Of a DNA stretch of 64,000 nucleotides, positions 4,192 through 61,617 are shown piece after piece; the first letter of the stretch is position 1; each line of letters opens with the position of its first letter. The position numbers were made by a program, and so were the translations under genes. The notes under the pieces were generated by a model. It was not told where the DNA came from and searched no databases. It worked only from the letters and a program-made list of their open reading frames with translations. The stretch is taken from sequence record KT895374.1; one strand, written 5' to 3'.

Positions 4192-5442
4192 TTACTTTTT
4201 AATATCCTCTATAGTTTTGATGAGATCTCTTCTATCGTCCATTATATACTTTCTGATAAGGTTTAATCTTTTTAGATTCCCATAAATAATAATTGTATAC
4301 ATGACATTTTTTAGAGGATCTTTAGTTTTTAAGGTGGTGTTTTTCCAATCGACTTCAAAGAAACCTTCATCAAGCTCTTTGTTATCCAATAGGACTTTTA
4401 CATTAAATAATTCCTTGAGGTTTAATTTTGCTTTTATAGCTTCTTCAAGCACTTCCCTAATTTCAGGATCTAATAATCTCTCAAATTGAAGATAATCAAT
4501 TTCTGTATTTATATCAGGTTCATATCCTTTATATTTCAGGAGGTGCATATTATCAATTTGTTCTCTAATAAAATGTGTAGGTACTTGAAATTCATATTTC
4601 ATTTTTCCATCATCCTCTAGATCTAATGGGATGTCTGGTACATCATCTTTAATTTCCATCACAAAATTTGAATGACTCCAAAAATCAAAAGAAAAGTTAA
4701 ATTCAACTGTTGAATCTTTTATAACTAATCCCTCTGTATTAACTTCTACGGTAGGAATATCTGGAAAATGTGTTAGAATATTAGTTTTATAATTATAATA
4801 ATATTTACTAGTTCCTGAAGCAGTATCAATACTTTCGGATATACCATTATAAGAATTATCAAATAGGTATTCTTCTAACTTGTTACGATCTACTTGATTT
4901 TTAAGATTAAGATTTAATCTCTGTGCAATATAAGTAGTATAAAGTTTAGGAATTCTAGTCTGAAGTCTAACATCATTAAGATAGAATCGACCACCAACCT
5001 CAAAGTTTTGCCTAATATAATGCAAGACATTAAGGGCTGATAATTTTGTTTGTAATACAATCTTTACATTAAAATCCATTTTAATTCGATCTGGTATAGA
5101 ATAAATATAAATATTATTCTTCTCATCATATAAGACTCCATTATATTGCTTGTGTGGTTTTTTAAATGTAAAATATTGAGTAGTATGCCATTTTGGTAAG
5201 AGTTCCATAAAACTATCTTCAGCAGTGTATTGTGTATCAATAACTAATAATGGTTTACTAAGTTTAATTATCTTATCATCTTCTAATCTTACTTCATTTA
5301 ATGAGTCAATAATGTACGTATCTTTAAAAAAATTAGGTGGAAATACTTCTTGTAAGAAACTCCTAGCATAGCCAGTAGCATTTCCAATTAGAGATGAAAT
5401 AGACGATGATGCTTTACAAGAAATAATTTGGGTTTCCTTCAA
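4192..5442 (-). CDS. hypothetical protein, possibly a virion structural protein (416 aa)
   Basis: Long ORF preceded by a late-type AACA-N6-TA motif; structural role is inference only. Confidence 0.55.
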   Translation of the reverse strand: MKETQIISCKASSSISSLIGNATGYARSFLQEVFPPNFFKDTYIIDSLNEVRLEDDKIIKLSKPLLVIDTQYTAEDSFMELLPKWHTTQYFTFKKPHKQYNGVLYDEKNNIYIYSIPDRIKMDFNVKIVLQTKLSALNVLHYIRQNFEVGGRFYLNDVRLQTRIPKLYTTYIAQRLNLNLKNQVDRNKLEEYLFDNSYNGISESIDTASGTSKYYYNYKTNILTHFPDIPTVEVNTEGLVIKDSTVEFNFSFDFWSHSNFVMEIKDDVPDIPLDLEDDGKMKYEFQVPTHFIREQIDNMHLLKYKGYEPDINTEIDYLQFERLLDPEIREVLEEAIKAKLNLKELFNVKVLLDNKELDEGFFEVDWKNTTLKTKDPLKNVMYTIIIYGNLKRLNLIRKYIMDDRRDLIKTIEDIKK

Positions 5443-5490
5443 TTATATCACTTCCATATACTTAATATTGGTATGTTTTAGTATAAAAAA

Positions 5491-21972: not shown

Positions 21973-24300
21973 TTAATCTTTGTAATTATCCTTGGAATAA
22001 GGCTCATTACAATCGACTAATATATTGTTATTTAAATAAGGAAGAATAATGGGAATATTTTCATTTAAATAGGTTAAAAAAGGTGTCAGGTTTTCATTGT
22101 TACAATTTATATCAATGGCATTTCCTTCCAATAGATTACTATCTATAAAATTATATAAAAGGAATACTCTAGATGGATTAAATAATCTAACATTATCATC
22201 ATACTTATAATCATTATAAGAACGGTTACTATTTAGACTTATATCATGATTAAAATAAATTGAAAGTTTTTCTTTAGGATTTATTGTAACAATTCCACCC
22301 TTAATATTTGTAAATAGGACTTCATTGTTAGAATTTAATCTAGGACTAATTTCATTTTTAATCATCTCATAAATTTGCTCTAAATAATTATATTTACTAT
22401 CAAATTGATAGATATATTTTAATCCTGTATAAGAATCTTTATCATCTTCTTTAATTTCTGGAATATCTTTTAAATCTATATACTTATTGATAAAATCATT
22501 ATGACCTGATTCAATGTATTCTTTATCCAACTCATTAGGATTTTCTTTATATAAATTTATTAGATTTTGAATGATAGGATCTTTTTCATAATGAAATCTA
22601 ATCATTATATTTTTTCTTGATTTTACATTCTTAAATGCTAATACTTTTGAATTAAGAATATCATATTGATCTTTATTTACCTTTTTATTATTAATAAAAA
22701 CAGTAAATGTATTTTCAATCAATGGGCTAGAATTATCAGGAAGAGTTACAATACTTCTATTATTAAAATTGGATTCGGATTCTTTAAAAAAGTAATAGGT
22801 ATTATCTAGATAATCTCTATAAATAATCTCTATTTTAGAACCAAAGAAAGTCATATCTTTAAATAGAATCATTGAAGGAACTTGTTTATGAAGTTTTAAA
22901 TTAATTAATGTATAGTCCTGTTCAGGAACTAATCTATAACCATTAACATATACTTCAATTTTTTCAATATCTGATAAAAATTCATTGATTACTTCACCTT
23001 TAGATGTAACATAAGTAACTGGAACAAAATAACAAGGTACTTGATATTCTTTAGCCATCTTATTGTACATATCAGTTTTAAAATACATGACTTCTGAAAG
23101 ATGATTAGTTGTGATCATTATTTCATTCCCAATTTTTGCAACATATGCATCTTTTATTCTAACTCTTAAGGAATATTTATTAGAGCCTTTATTGATAATA
23201 GTTACTTTTGTCCTTAAAGGATTAACTCTTTTCCAAGAATTACTATTTTTAAATCTAACATAAATTGAAAAATCTTTATGATTTACAAAACTACCAATTG
23301 AAGAATCATTAATGGTGATTCCTTTAGTATATAAATCCTCTAAATCATTATCATCCTGAATCATATACTTTAAATGATAATTTTCGGAATCTATTAATCT
23401 TTTTCTAAAATCCTCTAATGAAATAGTTGAATTATTTTTAATATCATATTCAGTGAGAAAAGCCTGATTTATTCCATCCTTTTTAATCTGGTGAGTATCA
23501 TCTCTACCGAATGTTTTCTTTCCATCAACAAAGACATTTAATTTATGAGAATCAGAGATAAAATGATTAATATCTTTTAAAATAAATTTATATTTTTCTC
23601 CACTTTTCCCAAAAGAAGCTTCCTCACCATAAATATCAAAAGGACTTTGTAGTTTGTATATTCCTTTTGTTCCAGAAGTTAATTTAAAATTTCTTTCATT
23701 AACTTTACTAGACATATAAGAAATAAGTTTTTTAATCTCATTAGGATCTAAACTCTCTACATTATTTAGAGAATCTATTAAAAATTTATCTTTATATCTA
23801 ATATCTCCATTAATTGTTATTTGCTTAATTTTAGATATACTATCAATATTTCTTTCTAATAATATTCCTTTTCTACTAGGGTAATAATAGTCTAATGAAT
23901 CTTTATAATTAAATAATCTAATTCTAACATATAAATCTTCTTGATCTGTATATTTATCAATTTTATCTGATAGAGTTATAAACTCTTTAGTGAAACCATT
24001 TTCAATTTCTTTTAATCTATAAAGTACTTCTTCCTTACTATTGATGATTTCTATTTGATTAGTAATAGTTAATTGAGAGAAGTTTTTAAATTTCCAAGTA
24101 ATATCTTCCTTAGAAATATTTAAATTTTCCAAAAAAAAGAGAGGAATCTTTTCTGATACCTCCCTTTCCATTCCTCTCTCATCTTTTACAATCAGATCTA
24201 TATTTAGATATGAACTATGAAATTCTCTATTACTATAGGTAATAATTTTTTCAATATCAATAGGAGTGTCCATTTTATCTGATTTATAAAGAGTAGCCAT
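21973..24300 (-). CDS. virion structural protein, baseplate/tail-associated (775 aa)
   Basis: Lies in the structural operon; N-terminus carries the WKxKN...YYP..GI repeat of the upstream gene. Confidence 0.6.
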   Translation of the reverse strand: MATLYKSDKMDTPIDIEKIITYSNREFHSSYLNIDLIVKDERGMEREVSEKIPLFFLENLNISKEDITWKFKNFSQLTITNQIEIINSKEEVLYRLKEIENGFTKEFITLSDKIDKYTDQEDLYVRIRLFNYKDSLDYYYPSRKGILLERNIDSISKIKQITINGDIRYKDKFLIDSLNNVESLDPNEIKKLISYMSSKVNERNFKLTSGTKGIYKLQSPFDIYGEEASFGKSGEKYKFILKDINHFISDSHKLNVFVDGKKTFGRDDTHQIKKDGINQAFLTEYDIKNNSTISLEDFRKRLIDSENYHLKYMIQDDNDLEDLYTKGITINDSSIGSFVNHKDFSIYVRFKNSNSWKRVNPLRTKVTIINKGSNKYSLRVRIKDAYVAKIGNEIMITTNHLSEVMYFKTDMYNKMAKEYQVPCYFVPVTYVTSKGEVINEFLSDIEKIEVYVNGYRLVPEQDYTLINLKLHKQVPSMILFKDMTFFGSKIEIIYRDYLDNTYYFFKESESNFNNRSIVTLPDNSSPLIENTFTVFINNKKVNKDQYDILNSKVLAFKNVKSRKNIMIRFHYEKDPIIQNLINLYKENPNELDKEYIESGHNDFINKYIDLKDIPEIKEDDKDSYTGLKYIYQFDSKYNYLEQIYEMIKNEISPRLNSNNEVLFTNIKGGIVTINPKEKLSIYFNHDISLNSNRSYNDYKYDDNVRLFNPSRVFLLYNFIDSNLLEGNAIDINCNNENLTPFLTYLNENIPIILPYLNNNILVDCNEPYSKDNYKD

Positions 24301-24310
24301 TCAATCACCC

Positions 24311-26863
24311 TTAATCTTTAATAATATAATAAACCTTTTCATAATCTTTATCAGAAACTGATGCTGACACGTCTAATTTATATTCAGATTCATTTTCAGT
24401 ACTATCTATTTCAACTTTAAAATTAGTTATATCAGGTTTATGATTGTTTTCTAATTTAAAAGGTATTCCATTTATACTAGGATAATAAGAAACTAATTGT
24501 TCTTCTTCTGTAAAAACTCTTAATCTGAAAAAGTAATCACCGTTATCATAATCATTGAAATCAATTTCTTCCATTAATTCTTTATATTCAGTCTGATTAG
24601 ATATTGTAAAAACCTTCCCTAGTCCATCAAGGTCTCCACTATTATTTAGAATTTCAGCTTGAATATTTATTGGTGAACTTGATAGGTTTCTAATTAACCA
24701 ATAGAATTCATTGTAATCTCTGTATAGATTTTGAATATCAAACATATATACTCTTTCTATAATTGAATTTATTTCATTACCCTCATCAATACACTCTATA
24801 AATAAATCAATATATGCTTTTCTTATATCATCTTTAGGATATTTTTGATAGGTTTCTAATTTTAAAGGAGTTTCTACATATTCTTTTGATTCTTCAATAA
24901 TATTTCCCTTACTATCTGTTACAGAGTAAGTGACCATATCATCTTCATTATCTTCAATGATGCCATTATAATTTATAACAGTTTCATCATCTTCATTAGT
25001 TTCAATTCCAATTGAATTTGTAGTTATTATTGGTTTAGTATTTTCTATAGTTGTAAATTTGATTCCCTCTTCATTTGGATAGTATTGAATCAAATCTTCC
25101 TCTTCTGATATTATTCGAATTCTATAATAATATTCCCCCTGTTTTAATTTAGGTCGTATTCTATCTTTTATTTCAACTGGTCTTAACGTTTCTCCAGTTC
25201 TATTTTCATTTCCTAAATAAACAGTATTTATCTCAATTTCTTCTTCAGTGTTTCCTTCTTCATCAGTAACTGAAACAAGATTATGTTCTAATATCTCTAA
25301 CTGTGTAATTAGTTCAAATCTAGAAAAATTATCTAATTTCCAGCTAAAAATATGTCCTAATCTTTCACGCAATGAAGATATAATAAAAGAGTTAGCTCTA
25401 ACTGCAAGAGTAGCTTCTCCACCCTTATCATCTATTACATAAATTACAATATTTGATCCTGAAGCATCAACAGTATATTCTTCTTTTAAGTTTAAATTAT
25501 AAGGGGTTTCTATATAATCTCTTGCTTCTCTAATTATTGTTCCTTCTTCATCTAAAACTGTAAAAAGAATATGATCATTTTCAGGATCAGTAATATCTGC
25601 GTTTAAGATTAAAAATCTTGTATCATCTAAATCTCTCATAAGATACGCTTCATTTAATGTAATGATTGGATTTAGATGAGGATATCTTGTGAATTGTATA
25701 CCTTCCTCGTTTGGATAATAGGTAGACCAATTATCTTCTTCACTCCATACTTTTAGACGAAACTTGTAATAATTCTTTTGAATAGCAAACTCTTCAGCGT
25801 CTTCTATATTAATAAAATTATATGAACCTCTATATTGATTTACTTCTCCAACCTTAACTATTTGATTATAAAAATCTAATACCTCTGGTTGCATAGATAT
25901 ATTTCTATTAGATCTATTTTTAAATTTCCATACAAAATGATCTCGGACTCTACGAAGATTATCAATTGAAAATAAGTCTACCTGATAGGAGTGACTATTA
26001 TTTCCATATATTTCATCAAAGACATTAACTGTAATAATTAACTTACTAGTATTAAAGAAAGTTTTAGGATATTCATACTCAAAAAAATCAATTCGTGGTG
26101 TGTAATCAAAATTAATCATCTCTTTTAATGTATTACCTAGATTATCTTTAATATTGTATTTTACTCTATCTTCTTCTTCATCACTAATAATTACCTTACC
26201 AGTTAATTTAAAAGTGCTTTTTTCTTCTAATAAAACAATATCTTTTAATCTTACTCTTGGATTTTCATTATTCCTTACAATAAATTTTATACCTGAATCG
26301 TCAGGATAATATCTATTCCAGTTTTCATCCTTACTATAATATCGAATTCGATAATAGTATTCGCCTTCCTCTAAATCTTTTAAGTTAATAGATGATCTAT
26401 AATTTGATGTACCTTTTTTATTAGAATCCATTCGGTATTCTAAACTATTAGTCATAAGTTCTTTTTCTTTGTTGACTATTTCAACCATTGTATAAATTGA
26501 ATAAGGAGAAAAGTTTTTAACTTTCCAAGAAAATTCATCCAATTTAGTTCTCTCTAGATTATAAATATCATATAGGTTAAAATCTTTTCTTATAGTATTA
26601 ATAGATCCTAAATCATTTTCAGCTTCAATAGTAATATAACTATTTGAGTTTTTAAACTTAACGTCTTCTAAAAAAATAACTTTAGATATTTTAATAGGTG
26701 ATAGTTTATACTCTTCTATTTGATCTATAATTTTACCATCTTCATTTTTAATTTTATACTTAATATTATTGCCATTATCATCCTCGATAATGGCAATAAC
26801 TCTTAGCTGAAGTCTATTTTTAGAATCCGAATCAACAGTTACAGATTGAATATTTAATTCCAT
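24311..26863 (-). CDS. virion structural protein with four ~200-aa beta-rich repeats (850 aa)
   Basis: Repeated F.WK.KN.S...EI...Y..RI...YYP...GI.F...P.I...I.D.E.D.V.Y. Confidence 0.65.
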   Translation of the reverse strand: MELNIQSVTVDSDSKNRLQLRVIAIIEDDNGNNIKYKIKNEDGKIIDQIEEYKLSPIKISKVIFLEDVKFKNSNSYITIEAENDLGSINTIRKDFNLYDIYNLERTKLDEFSWKVKNFSPYSIYTMVEIVNKEKELMTNSLEYRMDSNKKGTSNYRSSINLKDLEEGEYYYRIRYYSKDENWNRYYPDDSGIKFIVRNNENPRVRLKDIVLLEEKSTFKLTGKVIISDEEEDRVKYNIKDNLGNTLKEMINFDYTPRIDFFEYEYPKTFFNTSKLIITVNVFDEIYGNNSHSYQVDLFSIDNLRRVRDHFVWKFKNRSNRNISMQPEVLDFYNQIVKVGEVNQYRGSYNFINIEDAEEFAIQKNYYKFRLKVWSEEDNWSTYYPNEEGIQFTRYPHLNPIITLNEAYLMRDLDDTRFLILNADITDPENDHILFTVLDEEGTIIREARDYIETPYNLNLKEEYTVDASGSNIVIYVIDDKGGEATLAVRANSFIISSLRERLGHIFSWKLDNFSRFELITQLEILEHNLVSVTDEEGNTEEEIEINTVYLGNENRTGETLRPVEIKDRIRPKLKQGEYYYRIRIISEEEDLIQYYPNEEGIKFTTIENTKPIITTNSIGIETNEDDETVINYNGIIEDNEDDMVTYSVTDSKGNIIEESKEYVETPLKLETYQKYPKDDIRKAYIDLFIECIDEGNEINSIIERVYMFDIQNLYRDYNEFYWLIRNLSSSPINIQAEILNNSGDLDGLGKVFTISNQTEYKELMEEIDFNDYDNGDYFFRLRVFTEEEQLVSYYPSINGIPFKLENNHKPDITNFKVEIDSTENESEYKLDVSASVSDKDYEKVYYIIKD

Positions 26864-29268: not shown

Positions 29269-29772
29269 CTATTTTTTATTCTTAGTTGTTGATGATTTTT
29301 TTACATTAGATTTTGATTTTGTCTCTTTATTATCTGATTTTGATTCTTCTTTCTTTTCTTCAGTTTTTTCATTTTCTTTCTTTTGATCTTTTGTATCAGA
29401 TTTATCTTCAGACTTTTCTTTATTTAATTTTTCATCAACTTTTTTCTGTACTTCTTCTTGTTGCTCTTGAATTTCTTCTTCAACTTCTTCAGGTTCTAAA
29501 CCATCTAGTTCATTTTCAATTTCCTCCTTAGTAGATTTAACTAAGTCAGATTCTTCTTCAAAATCTCTTTCAGAAAATTCTACGGCTTCATCAATAGTTT
29601 CTTCAATTTCCTCTTCTGAAAGTTCTTCTTTGCTAGGCTTTAATTTTTCTTTAAGGTTTTTAACTTTCTCTTTACCTTTCTGTGCTAATTCAGTTTCCTT
29701 AAATTTATCATAAGCCTTTTTAGTTCCGATTCCGATAATAATTCCTGCACCTAAGATAGCTGATTTTTTCAT
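29269..29772 (-). CDS. membrane-anchored acidic, low-complexity protein (167 aa)
   Basis: N-terminal AILGAGIIIGIG segment, then an E/K-rich tail. Confidence 0.7.
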   Translation of the reverse strand: MKKSAILGAGIIIGIGTKKAYDKFKETELAQKGKEKVKNLKEKLKPSKEELSEEEIEETIDEAVEFSERDFEEESDLVKSTKEEIENELDGLEPEEVEEEIQEQQEEVQKKVDEKLNKEKSEDKSDTKDQKKENEKTEEKKEESKSDNKETKSKSNVKKSSTTKNKK

Positions 29773-29827: not shown

Positions 29828-29938
29828 TTATTTAACAAATTTTCTAAGTAATTCACGAGTTACAACGCCAGCAGTAGTTCCAATTGCAGTTTTGATAAAT
29901 ACTTCTTTAGTTAAATTGAAAAATCTTTTTTTGCTCAT
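29828..29938 (-). CDS. cationic amphipathic peptide 4 (36 aa), not in the ORF track
   Basis: MSKKRFFNLTKEVFIKTAIGTTAGVVTRELLRKFVK; GGGGGAG RBS. Confidence 0.75.
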   Translation of the reverse strand: MSKKRFFNLTKEVFIKTAIGTTAGVVTRELLRKFVK

Positions 29939-29962
29939 TTCAATCTCCCCCTTAAATTTTAT

Positions 29963-30237: not shown

Positions 30238-30339
30238 TTATTTATTTTTAAAGCATCTTTCTAGATATTTTCCAACTAATATTTGACAAGATATTGCGGC
30301 TGTCATAGACAAGGTAAACTTAATAAGATCTTTTTTCAT
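30238..30339 (-). CDS. cationic amphipathic peptide 1 (33 aa), not in the ORF track
   Basis: MKKDLIKFTLSMTAAISCQILVGKYLERCFKNK; GGAGGG RBS inside the end of the upstream gene. Confidence 0.7.
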   Translation of the reverse strand: MKKDLIKFTLSMTAAISCQILVGKYLERCFKNK

Positions 30340-30340
30340 T

Positions 30341-30685
30341 TTAATTCCCTCCAATTTCAATAAATTCTAGAAGAGTATTGAGTTCTTCAGCTAATTCTTT
30401 TCTATTAAATTCATCTGATTCATCATTATATTCAATGATTACCTTTTGATCAGTAATATTAAAATAGAGAGTATCATTATTATTCATTATGTGAAATGAA
30501 GAACTTCTTACATTACTTTTGACGAGATGTGTTATTTTTTTAAGTTCTTCTATTTCAAATTCTCCTATTACGTTAGAATTTTTTACCATAACAATTTTTT
30601 CATCCTTAATACCTATACCATAATCATTGCTGTCGAAATAAGCTAATTTAAATAACGAGCAAAGTTTAATCCTAATATCTCTCAT
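30341..30685 (-). CDS. hypothetical protein (114 aa)
   Basis: AGAGGA RBS; first gene after the leftward early-type promoter. Confidence 0.7.
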   Translation of the reverse strand: MRDIRIKLCSLFKLAYFDSNDYGIGIKDEKIVMVKNSNVIGEFEIEELKKITHLVKSNVRSSSFHIMNNNDTLYFNITDQKVIIEYNDESDEFNRKELAEELNTLLEFIEIGGN

Positions 30686-30774
30686 ATTTTTTCCTCTTTT
30701 CTACTTTTTATTTTTGTGAATGGATCATAGAAATTTCCTTAATTCTATAATGTTTTTATTCTTCTTTCACTATT

Positions 30775-30851
30775 ATAATATATATTTATTCGAATTTTTT
30801 GATACGGTTAGCAAATTTTAACTTATTTTTTAAAGCTATATTATTAAAATG
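30775..30851. promoter_or_regulatory. divergent pair of phage early-type promoters at the strand switch
   Basis: TATATTAT-N6-G on the minus strand at 30775..30782 and on the plus strand at 30837..30844. Confidence 0.7.
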
Positions 30852-43850: not shown

Positions 43851-44549
43851 ATGAATTTAGAAGTTCTAGAAAAAAAATTAAAACCCATGATTGAAGCAGA
43901 AAAATGGAATTCTATATCAGGATACAGTAATGGTTTATCAGAGGAATTCATAGAAAAATATGCTGATAAAATAGAATGGAATATATTATCCCAGACACAA
44001 AAATTGTCCGAATCGTTTATAGAAAAGCATTTATATAGATTCATTTCTTTAAAATTTTTAATTATGAAACAAAAATTGTCTGAATCTTTTATAGAAAAAC
44101 ATGTGGAATGTGAGATTTCAGAATATTGGATACTGGTTTTTCTTTATCAAAAAATTTCTGATAGATTTTCTAATAAATATGCAAGATATGTTAATTGGAA
44201 GAGAATATCAGGAATTTATAGTTTAAAAGAAGAATTTGTAGAACGATATAGCGATAAATTAAATTGGAAGAGAATGTCGATAAATCGTAAATTATCAGAA
44301 TCATTAATAGAACAATATTTGGATAAATTAGATTGTGAGCGTATATTAAAAGCTCGTAAATTATCAGAATCATTTATAGAAAAACATCAGGATAAATTAA
44401 ATTGGAGACTTATATCACTTTATCAAAAAATTTCAAAAGAATTTATAATTAGAAACAAAAATAAGATAGATTGGAAAATAATTGAGCATAACATCTATGT
44501 TAGCTTTGATGAAGAACTAGAGACTCTCTACAAATTATATGTAGTTTAG
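43851..44549 (+). CDS. Trp-repeat family protein
   Basis: About eight repeats; tail ELETLYKLYVV. Confidence 0.8.
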   Translation: MNLEVLEKKLKPMIEAEKWNSISGYSNGLSEEFIEKYADKIEWNILSQTQKLSESFIEKHLYRFISLKFLIMKQKLSESFIEKHVECEISEYWILVFLYQKISDRFSNKYARYVNWKRISGIYSLKEEFVERYSDKLNWKRMSINRKLSESLIEQYLDKLDCERILKARKLSESFIEKHQDKLNWRLISLYQKISKEFIIRNKNKIDWKIIEHNIYVSFDEELETLYKLYVV

Positions 44550-49544: not shown

Positions 49545-51084
49545 ATGATTATTACACCAACTGATAAGCAATCAAAAGCTATTAAGGATATTATTGCTTG
49601 GTATACAGGTAATGAATTTAATGGAAAAGATCCAAATAGAATTTTTACATTAAGTGGTTTAGCAGGATCGGGTAAAAGTTCCGTAGTTAAATTATTTATT
49701 GAGGAATTAGGATTAACAAATAATGAAGTTGCCTTTGCTGCTTATACGGGAATGGCAGCTAATGTTTTATTACAAAAAGGTAATACAGGTGCTACAACCA
49801 TTCATAAATTAATTTATGATACAGTACCGATAAAGAATGAGGAAACAGGAGAAATAGAAAAGTTTATACATCAATTAAAAGAAGAATTAGATAGAAAAGA
49901 AATTAAGTTAATAGTTATTGATGAAGTTTCAATGGTAAATGAGTCAATGTTGGAACAACTTAAAACCTTTGGTGTTAAAATTATTGCTATTGGTGATCCT
50001 GGTTTATAATAAAAGTTGGCTTGGATCTAAAAATACTTCTTTAATTGCTGGAAACTCCTTAGAACCTATTAAACTAAAACGTGATTGGTAACAATGAGCG
50101 TGAAAGTTAAAAATTAGTAGGATTGGACAATCAGCCGCTAAGTTCCTTTAATAAGGAGAAAGTTCAGAGACTATCAAAAACCTTTAGGTGAGTAGAGTAC
50201 ACTGTAAGCGTTGACAGTGGAAACAAGAAGCATCTTTAAAAGATGAAGATATAGTCCATTCTTATAGGAAACTATAAGCAGTTCATAAGAGAACGATATA
50301 AGTAGTAGCGCACTTATATGAATAAAATATGCAACTTCCACCAGTAAGTGGAGGTAATACACTTCTTAGAAATCCTGATGTATTCTTAGATGAAATACTA
50401 AGACAGGCATTAGATAATGAAATTATAAGACTATCTATGAAAGCTAGAAATGGAGAATATATTAATTTTGGAAGATATGGAAATGATGTAGTAGTAATTA
50501 GAAATAATCAGATTGAACCTGAAATGTTTATGTCAGCTGATCAGATCATTGCAGGAAGAAATGCAACAATTTCTGCATTAAATACTTATCATAGAAAGAA
50601 ACATCTAGGAATTAATGATCCTATGCCTATTGTTGGAGATAAAATTATTTGTCTAGATAATAATTGGAATTATGTATTAACAGAGGGGAATATTGAGATT
50701 TCCTTAGTAAATGGATCTATTGGAACAATTGAAGAAATGAGTAATCTACAGAGAGCTAGACTATACAACTTTACTTTTAAACCAAACTTTATGAAAGAGA
50801 AAGCATTTCATGATGTACATGTGGATAAAATTCCATTTATGCATGAAACTCTTCAGCAATCAATTAAACCAAAAGAACTTTATATTTATAGAAAGAAATT
50901 TATTGATGGAAATGGTATTAATAAATTCAATTATGGTTATGCTATAACATGCCATAAAAGTCAAGGATCAGAGTTTAATAACGTTTTACTTTTTAATGAA
51001 GTAATTAATAAGAGAATGCATCCTAGATGGTTGTATACAGCAATTACTAGAGCTAAAGAGAAATTAATTATTGTAAATGTATAG
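49545..51084 (+). CDS. RecD/Dda-like SF1B helicase, spliced (exons 49545..50003 and 50332..51084, 403 aa)
   Basis: GLAGSGKS, AAYTGMAA, VIDEVSMV, GDPG|QLPPV restored by splicing, YAITCHKSQGSEF, YTAITRAK. Confidence 0.9.
50004..50331 (+). ncRNA. group I intron (IA2-like), ORF-less, 328 nt
   Basis: Exon ends in U, intron ends in G; P AATTGCTGGAAA, Q AATCAGC, R TCAGAGACTA, S AAGATATAGTCC; P1 with a U-G pair; P10 AAGTTG/CAACTT. Confidence 0.92.
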
Positions 51085-56109: not shown

Positions 56110-56625
56110 ATGAAAAATCTAAGTAGGGAAGAAACATCAGTAAAAGTAAGAGAAATTATCAAGGAAAAACCTGAATATTCAGTTGAAAGAATTGCTGGAG
56201 AATTAGAACGTAGTACTGATTATGTTCGGAGTGTTATGAAAGAATATGGTATTGAAAAGAAAAAACATGTAAAAAGAAATGATAAAATTGATGAAATTGA
56301 AAGATTAGTTAATAAATTTCCAAGAATTACTATCAAGGAAATTGCTATTAGGCTTAATGTAAGTACTGTTACTGTTGGAAAGATCATGCGAGAAAATAAT
56401 ATAATGACTCAGACTCAAATCATTAAAAAGACTAAAAGAGAAGATATTGAAAAACTAATTAATGAAAATCCACATTGGACGTTGTTACATCTATCTCAAA
56501 AACTTAATATTTCAAAAGATCATTTAAGTTTCTTAATTAAAAAATATAAAATTGTATATAACAAGAAGAGAAGTAACATTACAATCCCAGTAAGTAAAAA
56601 TTTATCTCAAGGAGTTATAAATTAA
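56110..56625 (+). CDS. protein with three tandem HTH-like repeats
   Basis: PEYSVERIAGELERS, PRITIKEIAIRLNVSTVTV, PHWTLLHLSQKLNIS. Confidence 0.7.
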   Translation: MKNLSREETSVKVREIIKEKPEYSVERIAGELERSTDYVRSVMKEYGIEKKKHVKRNDKIDEIERLVNKFPRITIKEIAIRLNVSTVTVGKIMRENNIMTQTQIIKKTKREDIEKLINENPHWTLLHLSQKLNISKDHLSFLIKKYKIVYNKKRSNITIPVSKNLSQGVIN

Positions 56626-59219
56626 TGGTTGCTAAAAAACAAATGGAATATAATGAGGATTCAATTGTAGTATTAGAAGGACTAGAAGGCATTAGAACCA
56701 GATTTGATATGTATGTAGGTGGTAAGGATACAGCTTCCTTCCATCTAGTCAAAGAAGTGGTAGATAACTCCATTGATGAAGTATTGAATGATTTTGCTAC
56801 AAAAATTAATGTGGAGTATATTGAGAAAGATAATAAAATTATTATTGAAGATGATGGTCGAGGTTTACCAGTAGAAAAACATAAAAAATTAAAGAAACCT
56901 ACAATTGAGATTTTATTTACAGAAATCCATTCAGGTGGTAAGTTCGATAAAAATTCTTTCAAAGTATCTGGTGGGAAAAATGGCGTTGGTGTAAAGGCTA
57001 CAAATGCCTTATCTGAGTCATTAATTGTTGAATCATTCTATAAAGGACATCATTATAAAATTGAATTCTCTAGAGGTAAAGTTGTAAAACCATTAGAAAA
57101 GCTAGGTACTACAAAAAAATCAGGGACTAAAGTAACATTTATTCCAGATAGCACAATTTTTGGAGATTATGCTAAATTAGACCCTAATATCTTAAAAGAA
57201 GAATTGGATAAAAGAACTTATATCAATGCTGGTTTAACAATTAACTTCAAATATGGTAAGGAAAAATTAAAATTTTATCATGAAAATGGAATTAAAGATT
57301 ACTTAACAGCTCTTAATGATGATCCTCTATCAGATATTATTGAGTTTAAATTTGACGATAAAGATCTAAATAACTACCATGTTGTATTTAATTATGCTAA
57401 TAAAGATGAAGAACATATTAAGTCATTTGTTAATGGTATTGCAACAAGCAAAGGTACTCATGAGACAGGTTTTAAAACTGGTTTAACAACAGCTATCTTA
57501 GAGTATATTAGATCAAATAATCTATTGAACAAGAAAAATGAAAAGTTAGAGATTAAAGGGGAAGATATTAGGTCTGGTTTATTTACTATTATCAACCTAA
57601 AACATACTCTACCAGAATTTAAGAGTCAAACAAAAGATGAATTAAGTAATACTGATGTTATTGGAGTTATGAAAGTAAAAACACATGAAAGTACTTTAGA
57701 TTGGTTAAATAAAAATCCTGAATCAGCTAAAAAAATTTGTAACAGAATTATTGCGTTTGCTATTGGAAGAAAAGAAGCTAATGCGATTAAAGATAAAATT
57801 ATTAAAGTGAATAGTGGATCTTCAGGTTTATCTTTTATGGCTTCATTCTATGATTGTGACAATCGTGACATTAATGAAAATGAAATTATTGTTATTGAGG
57901 GAAAATCCGCTTCAGGAAATGTTCGTAATGCTAGGGATGCTAATATTCAAGCAGTATTTCCATTAAGAGGTAAACCGCTTAATTCTTATAATTCAAACCA
58001 TGCTAAAATTTTACAAAATAAAGAATATAAAGAGTTAATCAAAGTAATGTTTGGTAGTACTGATTTAAAGAATATTAATTATGAAACACTTAGGTATGGT
58101 AAATTAGTAATACTAAGTGATGCAGATGATGACGGTGAAATGATTGCCGTCAATAAATCTTTCTAACTGCTGGAATATCTTTAGAGTCTATTAAACTACA
58201 ACGTAATTGGTAACAATAAGCGTGATAGTTAAAAATTAATAGGATTAGATGATCAGCATCTAAGTTTCTCTTTCTAGAGAAAAAAGTTCAACGACTATCT
58301 TTTATAGAGTACAGTACAAGTGTACTGGAAAAGGAAGATACCTTTGATAAGGTAAAGATATAGTCTCATCTTATAGGATAACTATAAGCAGTTCATAAGA
58401 GAACGCATTAAAGAGTAACGTCTTTAATGGAAGATAATGTATCATATTGCCGCTTTATTATTAAGTTTTATTCATAGAAACTTTATAAAACTTATTGAAG
58501 ATGGTAGAATCTATATTGCAATGTCACCTCTTTATCGTATTAATAAAAATGGAAAATATATTTATTTTAAAAATGATAAAGAGTATGATAAATATCTAGT
58601 TAAAGAAATCTCTGAAACGTATGATTTAAAGGATATTAAAATGAAAGATTTTATCCAAAATGGTAAAAAATTCGTTCAAAAATTTGATCAAGTAAGATAT
58701 AAATACAATATTGATAGTTCAGTTTTAAATATCTTAGAAAATCATTACAAAGTAACTGGAACTGTGACAAGTGATGATGCATTTGAGGAATTAAAAGAAA
58801 AAGAATTAGAAATTACTAAGGAATCTAACTATTATCAAGTATCAGGACTAGTAGGAAATTCATGGCATAATTTCAAAATTGACTCTGATTTCTTAAAAGA
58901 TATTGACAGTTTATCAAAAACATATGCATTGGATATTGTTGACATTATCAATAAAAAAGATAAATCAACTGTTAATGATATGTATATTTACGATGCTTAT
59001 CATAAACTGTCAAGTTCTGTTAAATTTGAGAGAAAACGTTTTAAAGGAATTGGAGAAGCTAATGCAGATGAATTATTCGATACAACATTAGATCCTAAGA
59101 AACGTGATATTTTACAAGTTCAATTAAACGATTTTGATAAATCTGGAAATCTAAATGAATTATTCTTTGACAAAAATAAAGCTAACTTAAGAAAAGAATT
59201 TATTTTGGAAAATTTATAA
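56625..59219 (+). CDS. gyrB: type IIA topoisomerase B subunit (GyrB-like), spliced (exons 56625..58136 and 58440..59219, 763 aa)
   Basis: EVVDNSIDE, DDGRGLP, HSGGKF, GGKNGVGVKATNALS, EGKSA, PLRGKP, DADDDG|YHI restored by splicing, RFKGIGE. Confidence 0.9.
58137..58439 (+). ncRNA. group I intron (IA2-like), ORF-less, 303 nt
   Basis: Exon ends in U, intron ends in G; P AACTGCTGGAA, Q GATCAGCA, R TCAACGACTA, S AAGATATAGTCT; P1 UGACGGU/GCCGUCA with a U-G pair; P10 AUGAU/AUCAU. Confidence 0.92.
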
Positions 59220-59224
59220 AATAT

Positions 59225-59259
59225 AAAAGTAACTACTCTAATATAGAGTAGTTACTTTT
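59225..59259. terminator. 16-bp inverted repeat terminator
   Basis: AAAAGTAACTACTCTA-ata-TAGAGTAGTTACTTTT. Confidence 0.8.
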
Positions 59260-59284
59260 ATTTAAATAAGAATGGAGTTAGTAG

Positions 59285-60487
59285 ATGGATAATTTAAAAA
59301 ATAGATTAGAAGAATTAAATTTTAATATCGATAATAATTTAATACTTCTATCATTAGAAACATTAGATAAAAGAGATCTTGAAATTTTTAAATATATAGA
59401 ACACTGTGATAACCATATAAATAAAAATTTTTATAAATTGGATCTTAATATTTTTATCGAAGAATTTAATAAAATAAATAAGGTAAATTCTATTTTATTT
59501 CTAAGGCAAAATATAGTGTGCTTTAAATTGTCTAATTATGATCTTACAGAAATTGGGGGAATCAATAATCCAAAATATATAGTTCCAATTTTAACTTTAA
59601 TCTTTGAAATATTCTTAGAAAATAATATTTCATATGAGGTTGAAACATTACCTTATAAAAATGATTATCTTAATCTTTTAAGTAAACATTATGAAATTGT
59701 AAGAAGTATTCAAAAAAAGGATACCCCGTATAAAATTTCTTTTGATAGATCAGTTCTTGATACTGGAAATATTTTTAAGAAGATTGTTAAATTTATTTAT
59801 GAAGTAGTGTGTAAAAATTATGATGTCTCAGATTTTAAGAAAGATTTAAATTTTTTAAAAACCGATAGTTATGAAAGAGAAAATTTAAATTATCCTTATT
59901 TAGATTTAATGTATTTTGGAATACTAAAACCTACTGGTCATATTAGTAATGGTGTATGGTATGATTTTGTAGAATTAAATTATAAACTTTTATATAAAGA
60001 TTTAGATTTAAAAGATAAGGGAGCTATCAAATTATATTTCAATAGACTATTGGATGATTTTAAAAAGAGATTAGAAAATAAAAATAGAAAAAAATTATTT
60101 AATAAGAAAGAAGCATTGAAAAGTAATCAAAATTTAAGAAAAGCTTTGGAGGATTTTGATAAATATAAAGAAGTTTTTTACAGCAAATCTTTAACATATG
60201 GTCTAAATCCATTAGATTTATTAGCACATAGAAGTATATTCAAATATGAATATATGAAGTTAATAAATAATGCTTTAGTATTATTATTGGACAATTTAAA
60301 TCCAAAAGATCCAGATGATTTAGAGAAATTAACAAATTTGGAAAAACATTTGTTAAACAATCGGGGAAGATTTCAAGATGGTTATGATTTTTCTACTATA
60401 CTAAGGAAAGAATTATTTGAAGAGATTTATAATAGTTCAGAGGGTTATAAAAGGTTAATGACTAAAAAAAGTCTTAATGAAATATAA
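59285..60487 (+). CDS. hypothetical protein (400 aa)
   Basis: Long ORF with GGAG RBS; no motif recognised. Confidence 0.75.
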   Translation: MDNLKNRLEELNFNIDNNLILLSLETLDKRDLEIFKYIEHCDNHINKNFYKLDLNIFIEEFNKINKVNSILFLRQNIVCFKLSNYDLTEIGGINNPKYIVPILTLIFEIFLENNISYEVETLPYKNDYLNLLSKHYEIVRSIQKKDTPYKISFDRSVLDTGNIFKKIVKFIYEVVCKNYDVSDFKKDLNFLKTDSYERENLNYPYLDLMYFGILKPTGHISNGVWYDFVELNYKLLYKDLDLKDKGAIKLYFNRLLDDFKKRLENKNRKKLFNKKEALKSNQNLRKALEDFDKYKEVFYSKSLTYGLNPLDLLAHRSIFKYEYMKLINNALVLLLDNLNPKDPDDLEKLTNLEKHLLNNRGRFQDGYDFSTILRKELFEEIYNSSEGYKRLMTKKSLNEI

Positions 60488-60825: not shown

Positions 60826-61284
60826 ATGGAAAAAAGTGAAAACTATTACAAAATAAAAGAATTATTAGAAATGAATCCTTATATAAAATCAACTGAAATA
60901 GCAAAAAGATTAAATCTAACACCAGCAACGATTTATTATTATATTAAACTCTATAATATGAGAGATAGAAATACTGAAATGAATAGTAGGAGTATTGAGA
61001 CTGTAAGAAAGATTAAAGAAGCAATTAAAAATAATCCTCACTACAATATTAGACAAATTGGAGAAAGTGTAGGTATTAGTGGAAAAAGTGCGTTTTATTA
61101 TATTACAGCATATAACCTTGCATATAAAAGTAATGAAGAAAAAGTAAAGGAATATTTAAAAGAAAATCCAGTATCAACTATAGAACAAATTTCAGAAGCA
61201 TTAAAAATTAAACATAATACAGTTTATAATATTATTTATCGCAATGATCTAAAATATTTAAAAAAGAAAAAGGGGAAAAAATAA
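60826..61284 (+). CDS. protein with three tandem HTH-like repeats
   Basis: PYIKSTEIAKRLNLT, PHYNIRQIGESVGIS, PVSTIEQISEALKIK. Confidence 0.7.
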   Translation: MEKSENYYKIKELLEMNPYIKSTEIAKRLNLTPATIYYYIKLYNMRDRNTEMNSRSIETVRKIKEAIKNNPHYNIRQIGESVGISGKSAFYYITAYNLAYKSNEEKVKEYLKENPVSTIEQISEALKIKHNTVYNIIYRNDLKYLKKKKGKK

Positions 61285-61617
61285 ATGGGTATTTTAAGAG
61301 CTTCTATGATCCAAAAGCATATAAATAAAAATCCAAATCAAAATATGGAGCAGATTGCTAAAGAACTAAAAGTTTGTAGAGGTACAATTGCAAATTTCAT
61401 TCAAAAATATAATCTAAATTATCAACCTAAAATCAAAGGTCCAGAGAGTAAAATAGATATTCAAGAATTAAAGGAAATCTTAAAGGATGCTAGGGATTGG
61501 AGACTAAAGGATATCGCTGAATATTTCGATTGTTCAATAAGTAGGATTTCAGTCATTATTAAAAAACATGAATTAAATTATAGAGATAAAAGAAAAAAGA
61601 TTAGTTTTAAAAATTAA
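61285..61617 (+). CDS. protein with two HTH-like repeats
   Basis: PNQNMEQIAKELKVCRGTI, WRLKDIAEYFDCSISRI. Confidence 0.7.
   Translation: MGILRASMIQKHINKNPNQNMEQIAKELKVCRGTIANFIQKYNLNYQPKIKGPESKIDIQELKEILKDARDWRLKDIAEYFDCSISRISVIIKKHELNYRDKRKKISFKN

Follow-up and report, generated by a model that had tools for sequence, protein, structure and literature searches.

How does Bacillus phage vB_BpuM-BpSp (BpSp) produce the B subunit of a type IIA topoisomerase when the gene for it appears as two open reading frames (ORFs), with the break falling inside the catalytic motif of the TOPRIM domain? The stretch of DNA analyzed here, referred to as the window, comprises bases 1-64000 of KT895374, and megablast matches 56625-59219 to KT895374.1 at 100% identity with identical coordinates. 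BpSp is a 255.6-kb jumbo phage of the genus Takahashivirus, within the AR9/PBS1 group, with Bacillus pumilus as its host. The public record lists two coding sequences (CDSs) at this locus, gp077 ("DNA topoisomerase", 56625-58166) and gp078 ("DNA-gyrase B-subunit", 58437-59219), and no intron feature. A preliminary description of this DNA, made from the letters alone, had placed a group I intron without an ORF at the end of the TOPRIM D-x-D-x-D-G motif, immediately behind its Gly codon; this placement is upheld by an Rfam model, by covariation, by an in-frame join that matches phage AR9, by introns at the same site in other phages and by the lack of an internal ORF. We conclude that 58137-58439 is very probably a bona fide group I intron that would be removed from a single gyrB-type mRNA. 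The parts of the gene, with lengths in nucleotides (nt), are as follows.

56625-58136, + strand: exon 1 of the type IIA topoisomerase B-subunit gene; 504 codons; GHKL ATPase, transducer and first part of TOPRIM (PF02518, PF00204, PF01751); ends ...SDADDDG
58137-58439, + strand: predicted group I intron without an ORF; 303 nt; RF00028 at 64.4 bits, E = 4.5e-16; 15 other family members related
58440-59219, + strand: exon 2; 259 codons plus stop; starts YHIAALLL; rest of TOPRIM and the GyrB C-terminal domain (PF00986)

Removal of the intervening segment yields one reading frame

The GyrB homology of gp077 ends after codon 504 (GGT, last base 58136), beyond which the ORF runs on for nine unrelated codons to a stop; the read-through tail is ...DDDGEMIAVNK, and the 513-residue product has the C-terminal end ...DDDGEMIAVNKSF, in which the last nine residues are intron-encoded. 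The second ORF, gp078 (58437-59219, 260 residues), has as its annotated start an AUG at 58437-58439, the final three bases of the intron. Exon 1 measures 1512 nt, or 504 codons, and stays in frame when joined to base 58440. Excision of 58137-58439 gives ...SDADDDG/YHIAALLLSF... (slash, junction), a product of 763 residues with one terminal stop, just as the two ORFs had been expected to fuse. At the RNA level the spliced junction reads ...GACGGU/UAUCAU..., the conceptual protein across it is ...DADDDGYHIAALL..., and the predicted junction tryptic peptide is ...LVILSDADDDGYHIAALLLSFIHR. The boundaries are unambiguous, because the first base is G in the intron and U in exon 2, and no shifted pair of sites gives an equal join.

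We find that the spliced product aligns with the uninterrupted AR9 gp024 (767 residues) without a gap at the junction, at 62% identity over 762 residues, with DADDDG/YHIAALLL in BpSp opposite DADDDG/YHITMLLL in AR9. Consistent with this, the tblastn match of exon 2 to AR9 and PBS1 GyrB starts at the base right after their exon-1 equivalent. In Pfam, the GHKL ATPase, the transducer, TOPRIM with its acidic D-x-D-x-D motif and the C-terminal domain are all found across the two exons, and the Toprim profile PF01751 is matched over positions 1-69 of 96 in exon 1 and cut exactly at residue 504. Matches to ParE and GyrB structures in the PDB (E from 2e-84 to 1e-79) also end at residue 504, where ...ILSDADDDG is aligned with ...IMTDADTDG. 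As the ParE and GyrB matches are about equal, the predicted product is a phage type IIA topoisomerase B subunit of GyrB/ParE-like character, and a strict "gyrase" label goes beyond this evidence.

Catalytic core and secondary structure

Searched with cmscan on a slice of the window (58000-58600, 601 nt), the segment exceeds the gathering score of RF00028 (50 bits), and the whole model, positions 1-253 of 253, is matched at 58127-58388; recognition by the group I model had been anticipated. An unconstrained minimum free energy (MFE) fold of 58125-58451 has z = -4.9 relative to 100 shuffles and recovers P1, P3, P5a/b, P6a, P7.2, P8, P9, P9.1 and P9.2. The elements that had been read by eye, namely P1 with its U·G pair, P10, P3, P4, P7, P7.2, P8 and the CUUAUAG stem of P9, all fall where they had been placed. 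In the list below, compensatory pairs are those counted in a MAFFT alignment of 11 family members, and pairs changed on both sides are those of a model-based alignment, both of which are described in the next section.

58131-58151, + strand: P1 (58131-58138 with 58144-58151); exon GACGGU plus GA pairs with UUGCCGUC, the internal guide sequence; Rfam alignment and MFE fold
58140-58144, + strand: P10 guide AUGAU, pairing with exon-2 AUCAU at 58441-58445; direct reading
58157-58164, + strand: 5' strand of P3, pairing with 58332-58339; Rfam alignment; 5/7 pairs compensatory
58168-58258, + strand: P4 (58168-58173 with 58253-58258) enclosing P5 and P5a/P5b, with a GUAA tetraloop at 58210-58213; P4 98% paired with 1/6 pairs compensatory, P5 with 3/4
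58259-58286, + strand: P6/P6a hairpin with a 7-bp stem (58265-58271 with 58276-58282); 6/7 pairs of P6a compensatory
58293-58297, + strand: 5' strand of P7, GACUA, pairing with UAGUC at 58361-58365 and forming a pseudoknot with P3; all 5 pairs invariant, none compensatory
58299-58327, + strand: insert between P7 and the 3' strand of P3, with a weak P7.1 (58299-58309) and P7.2 (58312-58317 with 58322-58327); MFE fold; 3/6 pairs of P7.2 compensatory
58340-58353, + strand: P8 hairpin; 4/5 pairs compensatory, 4/4 changed on both sides
58370-58388, + strand: P9 (CUUAUAG/CUAUAAG); 5/7 pairs compensatory, 6/7 changed on both sides
58391-58429, + strand: P9.1 (58391-58404) and P9.2 (58406-58429, loop GUAACG); covariation and MFE fold; P9.1 with 2/4 pairs compensatory and 3/4 changed on both sides, P9.2 with 8/9 compensatory
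58439, + strand: terminal G (omega G) and 3' splice site; sequence reading

The exon bases GACGGU pair with GCCGUC, with U58136·G58146 as the wobble pair at the 5' splice site. The conserved blocks J6/7-P7 (GUUCAACGACUA) and J8/7-P7 (AAGAUAUAGUC) both agree with the Rfam consensus, and P7 is presumed to hold the guanosine-binding site. The last 51 nt of the intron, which lie beyond the Rfam model, fold as P9.1 and P9.2 and end in G58439. Neither strand of 58137-58439 contains an ORF of at least 25 residues, in keeping with the description of the intron as ORF-less.

With regard to the extra helices of subgroup IA2, P7.2 is clear (6 bp, covarying), and P7.1 is at best a weak 4-bp hairpin (58299-58302 with 58306-58309) that is well formed in paralogues and nearly deleted in the gyrB copy. 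Judged by general criteria rather than a subgroup-specific model, and by blastn similarity to introns of Twort/K-like phages, the intron appears to be of subgroup-IA type. The loop of P9.2 (58415-58420), with the sequence (G/U)UA(A/G)CG, is kept across all 16 family members (UAACG/UAGCG), and the stem below it varies freely. This conserved motif suggests a tertiary contact.

A family of related introns

A blastn search with the intron returns 11 places in the BpSp record, together with introns in many Staphylococcus, Bacillus, Enterococcus, Brochothrix and crAss-like phages. Since a full-length alignment of four sequences extends to 433 columns, we used a covariance model of the 3' domain (R1), built from four relatives and run on the rest of the BpSp genome and on gyrB loci, and the remaining helices were counted by script. 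Of the 16 members that R1 finds, 14 are in BpSp and two are the gyrB introns of Bacillus phage vB_BspM_Internexus (Internexus) and Staphylococcus phage PALS_2. The model-based alignment has 96.8% of its cells paired, with changes on both sides at 13 of the 18 pairs. The scripted count of compensatory changes comes from a MAFFT alignment, made from sequence alone, of the 11 members whose core is contiguous.

Pairing with the exons follows the same pattern. The P1 guide tracks the exon in the paralogues (GAUCCUGGU/GCUUGGAUC in the helicase gene, AGCCGAU/GUCGGCU in polB), and P10 covaries as well, with AUGAU and AUCAU in BpSp and Internexus and UGUAA and UUACA in PALS_2. The members in BpSp other than the gyrB intron are these.

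50004-50331, + strand: second copy in the window, without an ORF; sequence identity to the gyrB intron 76%; a slice scores 79.4 bits with RF00028
L007:47580-47695: one member outside the window, 3' domain found by R1
L008:3976-4093, 5011-5132, 5366-5484, 23900-24018(-), 25485-25614(-), 44284-44408(-): six members outside the window, by R1
L009:27667-27783(-), 29512-29632(-), 29843-29959(-), 30290-30406(-), 30728-30843(-): five members outside the window, by R1

The copy at 50004-50331 splits a helicase of the SF1 RecD/Pif1/Dda type: the first exon (gp065) ends at 50003 with ...IAIGDPG, and the second (gp066) begins at 50332 with QLPPVSGG.... Each half carries a hypothetical-protein label, and the start AUG of gp066 is again made of the last three intron bases and lacks a Shine-Dalgarno sequence. 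All twelve members outside the window are unannotated, and several have ORFs in the P6 or P1 loop. They lie in or adjoin the gene for B-family DNA polymerase (gp206/207), those for RNA polymerase beta subunits (gp155-158, gp245 and, for a run of four introns, the stretch from gp248 to gp250) and the prohead protease region (gp187-191). A 405-nt gap upstream of BpSp gyrA (gp105/gp106), scanned with Rfam as a slice, gives no intron.

The same site in related phages

Relatives were surveyed by tblastn, the queries being the end of exon 1 and exon 2, and the loci were then read. The preliminary description had looked to this site in related phages for support, and we find introns at the identical codon boundary in Internexus and PALS_2. 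Internexus carries a 404-nt ORF-less intron (L002:2816-3219; RF00028 at 64.7 bits), and PALS_2 a 1266-nt intron (L003:3316-4581) in which the 287-residue ORF PALS2_026 (L003:3384-4247) occupies the P1 loop, downstream of the 5' splice site and ahead of the internal guide sequence. This ORF matches PHROG 559 (HNH endonuclease, 1.4e-40) and PHROG 9084 (homing endonuclease, 5.5e-15) and has no match in Pfam. An ORF ahead of the guide sequence is also present in the BpSp intron at about 137.0-137.2 kb, as in PALS_2.

Both introns are inserted after GAC GGT, like that of BpSp, and are homologous to it at the 5' start (GAAAUGAUU in Internexus), in the P9.1 block and in the 3' tail, GAAGAU...G; PALS_2 differs in the endonuclease-type ORF of its P1 loop, and Internexus in its bigger P5 and P7.2 inserts. 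The Internexus and PALS_2 records each list two separate gyrase B CDSs, as KT895374 does, and the split gyrB calls that had been forecast for annotation pipelines are thus found in three records. The gyrB halves are contiguous, without an intron, in AR9, PBS1, Goe21, the Staphylococcus phages S6, SA1 and UFV_DC4, and Listeria phage LPJP1; phiR1-37 is among the exon-2 tblastn matches only and stands outside the junction comparison.

The pair of AR9, without the intron, and Internexus, with it, is particularly close, with GyrB proteins that are 99.7% identical and genes that differ at 24 nucleotides. Three of these 24 differences are synonymous and fall in the three codons at the insertion site, which read GAT GGA/TAC in AR9 and GAC GGT/TAT in Internexus; they create the -1 U and the P1/P10 pairing, and all three intron-bearing alleles read GAC GGT/. 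This synonymous cluster fits co-conversion during homing, selection for P1/P10 pairing, or both, and the AR9/Internexus presence/absence polymorphism, which speaks for a recent gain or loss, points to past mobility of the lineage and not to current mobility of the BpSp copy.

A neighboring site, DAD/DDG, lies 6 nt (two codons) upstream. Direct reading places gyrB introns there in Staphylococcus phage MarsHill (155 nt, L004:2807-2961) and Machias (177 nt, L122:1007-1183, approximate), and gaps in the tblastn matches suggest the same in Madawaska, PB50 and AH12, for which the loci themselves lie outside the direct reading. The MarsHill and Machias records annotate gyrB as a joined CDS. Introns of the MarsHill type resemble the BpSp intron in phage clade, gene, TOPRIM motif and the ribozyme family core GUUCAACGACUA / AAGAUAUAGUC; they differ as minimal forms of 155-177 nt that lack P5abc, P7.1/7.2 and P9.1/9.2, whereas the 303-nt BpSp intron has peripheral helices and is unannotated. 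The MarsHill intron scores 37 bits, below the gathering score, and has 3 nt where P8 is expected; Machias retains a 5-bp P8 (ACUCU/AGAGU). A P8-less group I intron in an apparently needed gene is unusual; it may splice poorly, require assistance or stem from a sequence error.

Searches of public collections add no further case. A protein search of IMG/VR with the exon-2 alignment returns only AR9 itself, and junction patterns give only chance matches in unrelated coding sequence in IMG/VR (GAYGAYGAYGGTGAAATGAT; 11 loci), metagenome contigs from JGI (74) and GTDB genomes (25). None of these loci combines a TOPRIM motif with an intron core and R1 finds nothing in them, with the limit that such narrow patterns have little bearing on divergent introns at the same site.

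Proposed splicing and mobility

In the mechanism that we propose, both exons would be transcribed together as a single gene, and the intron RNA would fold into the P3-P9 core. The internal guide sequence would pair with the last six exon bases to form P1, and an external guanosine would attack after U58136. The terminal G58439 would then enter the guanosine site in P7, P10 would align exon 2, and the exons would be ligated at the junction given above. The spliced mRNA is predicted to encode one protein of 763 residues in which the TOPRIM motif DADDDG-YHI is intact.

Because the BpSp intron has no endonuclease gene, it may be a passive remnant, or it may be moved by an endonuclease acting in trans, supplied by a PALS_2-type intron ORF or an ORF-carrying BpSp paralogue. 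No free-standing endonuclease is found adjoining BpSp gyrB, where gp076 has helix-turn-helix-type matches only and gp079 has no Pfam match and a PHROG of unknown function.

A broader proposal is that the six bases at the end of the D-x-D-x-D-G motif are an insertion hot spot with two sites, for which two group I lineages in Bacillus and Staphylococcus uracil-DNA jumbo phages would compete: one at DADDDG/ (BpSp, Internexus, PALS_2) and one at DAD/DDG (MarsHill-like). The BpSp copy would be moved, or would protect its site, via trans endonucleases that act in interference competition between co-infecting phages. PMC13282480 cites Birkholz et al. 2024 for a demonstration of such competition in nucleus-forming jumbo phages, where the endonuclease belongs to an RNA-polymerase intron. 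We regard the proposal for gyrB as a whole as unlikely.

As to the surroundings of the gene, a perfect 18-bp hairpin with U/A-rich flanks (59223-59261) stands directly 3' of the gyrB stop codon. It is the sole terminator-like site within 56300-59400 and probably marks the end of the transcription unit. The AR9-type early promoter motif (TATATTAT) does not occur within the intron, and matches to sigma-70-like promoters and terminators across the region are no commoner than in shuffled sequence. Flanking gyrB are the small proteins gp076, gp081 and gp082 (56110-56625, 60826-61617), apparently repeated helix-turn-helix modules, as judged from many weak Pfam matches for gp076 and from reading of the translations only for gp081 and gp082.

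Alternative readings of the locus

Four points weigh against a functional group I intron. Splicing in BpSp is deduced from the DNA sequence. The near loss of P7.1, together with the lack of P2, makes for some departure from the textbook IA2 fold. The covariation score is reached by 0 of 500 shuffles, a control that overstates independence, and with it significance, because the sequences are related and mostly paralogues from one genome; given that controls slid in register pair only 32-49%, and given the variety of pair types, we find the predicted structure convincing all the same. Finally, Rfam scans of the whole 64-kb window, both at the gathering score and at E <= 0.01, return zero group I intron matches. 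This is a loss at the filter stage and not a weak score. Speed filters lose AT-rich, insert-rich introns when given much sequence, and slices of 600-700 nt score 64.4 and 79.4 bits. We therefore reject the whole-window null as evidence of absence.

The alternative that fares best, though we consider it very improbable, is an inactive intron in a pseudogene, with the phage reliant on host gyrase or topoisomerase IV. A reduced P7.1 and a missing endonuclease ORF are indeed typical of ageing introns in the homing cycle, yet decay of the gene is hard to reconcile with two exons that stay open over 763 codons and keep all Pfam domains and the TOPRIM motif. Nor does the RNA look inactive, since paralogues in polymerase genes have the very same core blocks, GUUCAACGACUA and AAGAUAUAGUC, and the U·G pair, omega G, P1 and P10 are intact.

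Marginally less probable still is a true split gene, in which gp077 (513 residues) and gp078 (260 residues, from the AUG at 58437) are separate products that come together as an active B subunit around a dead intron remnant in the intervening RNA. T4 topoisomerase II, built of the separately encoded gp39 and gp60 (molecule names among the PDB matches), offers a precedent, GenBank lists two CDSs, and an in-frame AUG stands exactly at the 3' end of both the gyrB and the helicase intron. The gyrB break, however, falls inside the TOPRIM fold right after the metal-binding acidic motif and not at a domain boundary, and the AUG of gp078 lacks a proper Shine-Dalgarno sequence, having only GGAAG at a 3-nt spacing, part of it buried in P9.2, whereas neighboring genes have GGAG-type sites 7-11 nt upstream. 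A dead remnant also sits poorly with a catalytic core in which every element is kept and covarying, and with splice-site pairings that are maintained by synonymous exon changes.

That the structure arose by chance or belongs to another class (some other structured RNA, a group II intron, an intein-type insertion) has in our view next to no probability, as the two empty whole-window scans that favor it stand against a slice E-value of 4.5e-16 with the full model, a paralogue at 79.4 bits in the same window and the covariation within the family. Within this class, an intein is excluded by stops in all frames of the insert; a group II intron is excluded by the match to a group I core and the lack of group II features and of a reverse-transcriptase ORF; and a programmed frameshift or bypass is rejected on the same three grounds of stops in all frames, no reverse-transcriptase ORF and the group I core match. 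A group I intron removed from one gyrB-type mRNA thus stands as our preferred reading.

Implications for annotation

In the BpSp, Internexus and PALS_2 records, one joined CDS is due in place of the two gyrB-type CDSs. In BpSp at least 14 introns of this family are unannotated, and the genes that they interrupt, for helicase, DNA polymerase, RNA polymerase and prohead protease, appear in the record as pieces labeled hypothetical; hidden introns of this kind inflate gene counts and hide orthology. Claims that Rfam found no introns in AT-rich phages call for caution, given the whole-window null set against slices of 64-79 bits. One such statement is made in the UFV_DC4 genome paper; the gyrB of that phage is indeed contiguous, yet the filter loss suggests that Rfam negatives of this kind need care.

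The locus also makes the type IIA topoisomerase B subunit a further case in which phage group I introns target the codons of a catalytic motif, and the gyrB alleles offer a natural series for intron gain, loss and reduction, from none (AR9, PBS1 and others) through 155-177 nt (MarsHill type), 303 nt (BpSp) and 404 nt (Internexus) to 1266 nt with an endonuclease ORF (PALS_2). The intron is an ordinary kind of element for the intron-rich group of AR9-like phages; the main value of these findings lies in the corrected annotation, in the at least 14 unannotated introns recognized in BpSp, in the warning on covariance-model filters and in the series of intron states at one catalytic-motif site.

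Comparison with known systems

Phages classically carry group I introns in essential genes of DNA metabolism, and AR9-like jumbo phages are rich in introns. The classical phage IA2 introns include those of T4 td, nrdB and nrdD, of the SPO1 DNA polymerase gene and of the Staphylococcus phages Twort and K. The BpSp intron resembles these in its small size, in residing in an essential DNA-metabolism gene at conserved catalytic-motif codons, in its insert between P7 and the 3' strand of P3 (the place of P7.1/P7.2) and in its P9.x extensions, and blastn finds its core 70-76% identical to introns of Twort/K-like Staphylococcus phages, Brochothrix A9 nrd, Enterococcus phages and crAss-like phages. 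It differs in lacking P2 and an endonuclease ORF, in its vestigial P7.1, and in its host gene, a topoisomerase B subunit, which is not among the classical examples.

The preliminary description knew of no well-characterized group I intron in gyrB. We likewise find no description of an experimentally characterized one, or of the BpSp introns, in the literature; that part of the claim stands, whereas gyrB introns as such are not new, since Korn et al. (bioRxiv 10.1101/2020.12.14.422802) already count DNA gyrase B among the genes with predicted and annotated introns in MarsHill, Madawaska and Machias. The same study reports two introns in AR9 gyrA and an intein in MarsHill gyrA. GyrB and GyrA inteins and the split T4 topoisomerase genes for gp39 and gp60 show further routes by which mobile elements break up type IIA topoisomerase genes; the BpSp insert differs from both as a non-coding RNA that would be removed before translation. 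Set beside these systems, the BpSp gyrB intron is a previously unannotated intron of an already known type.

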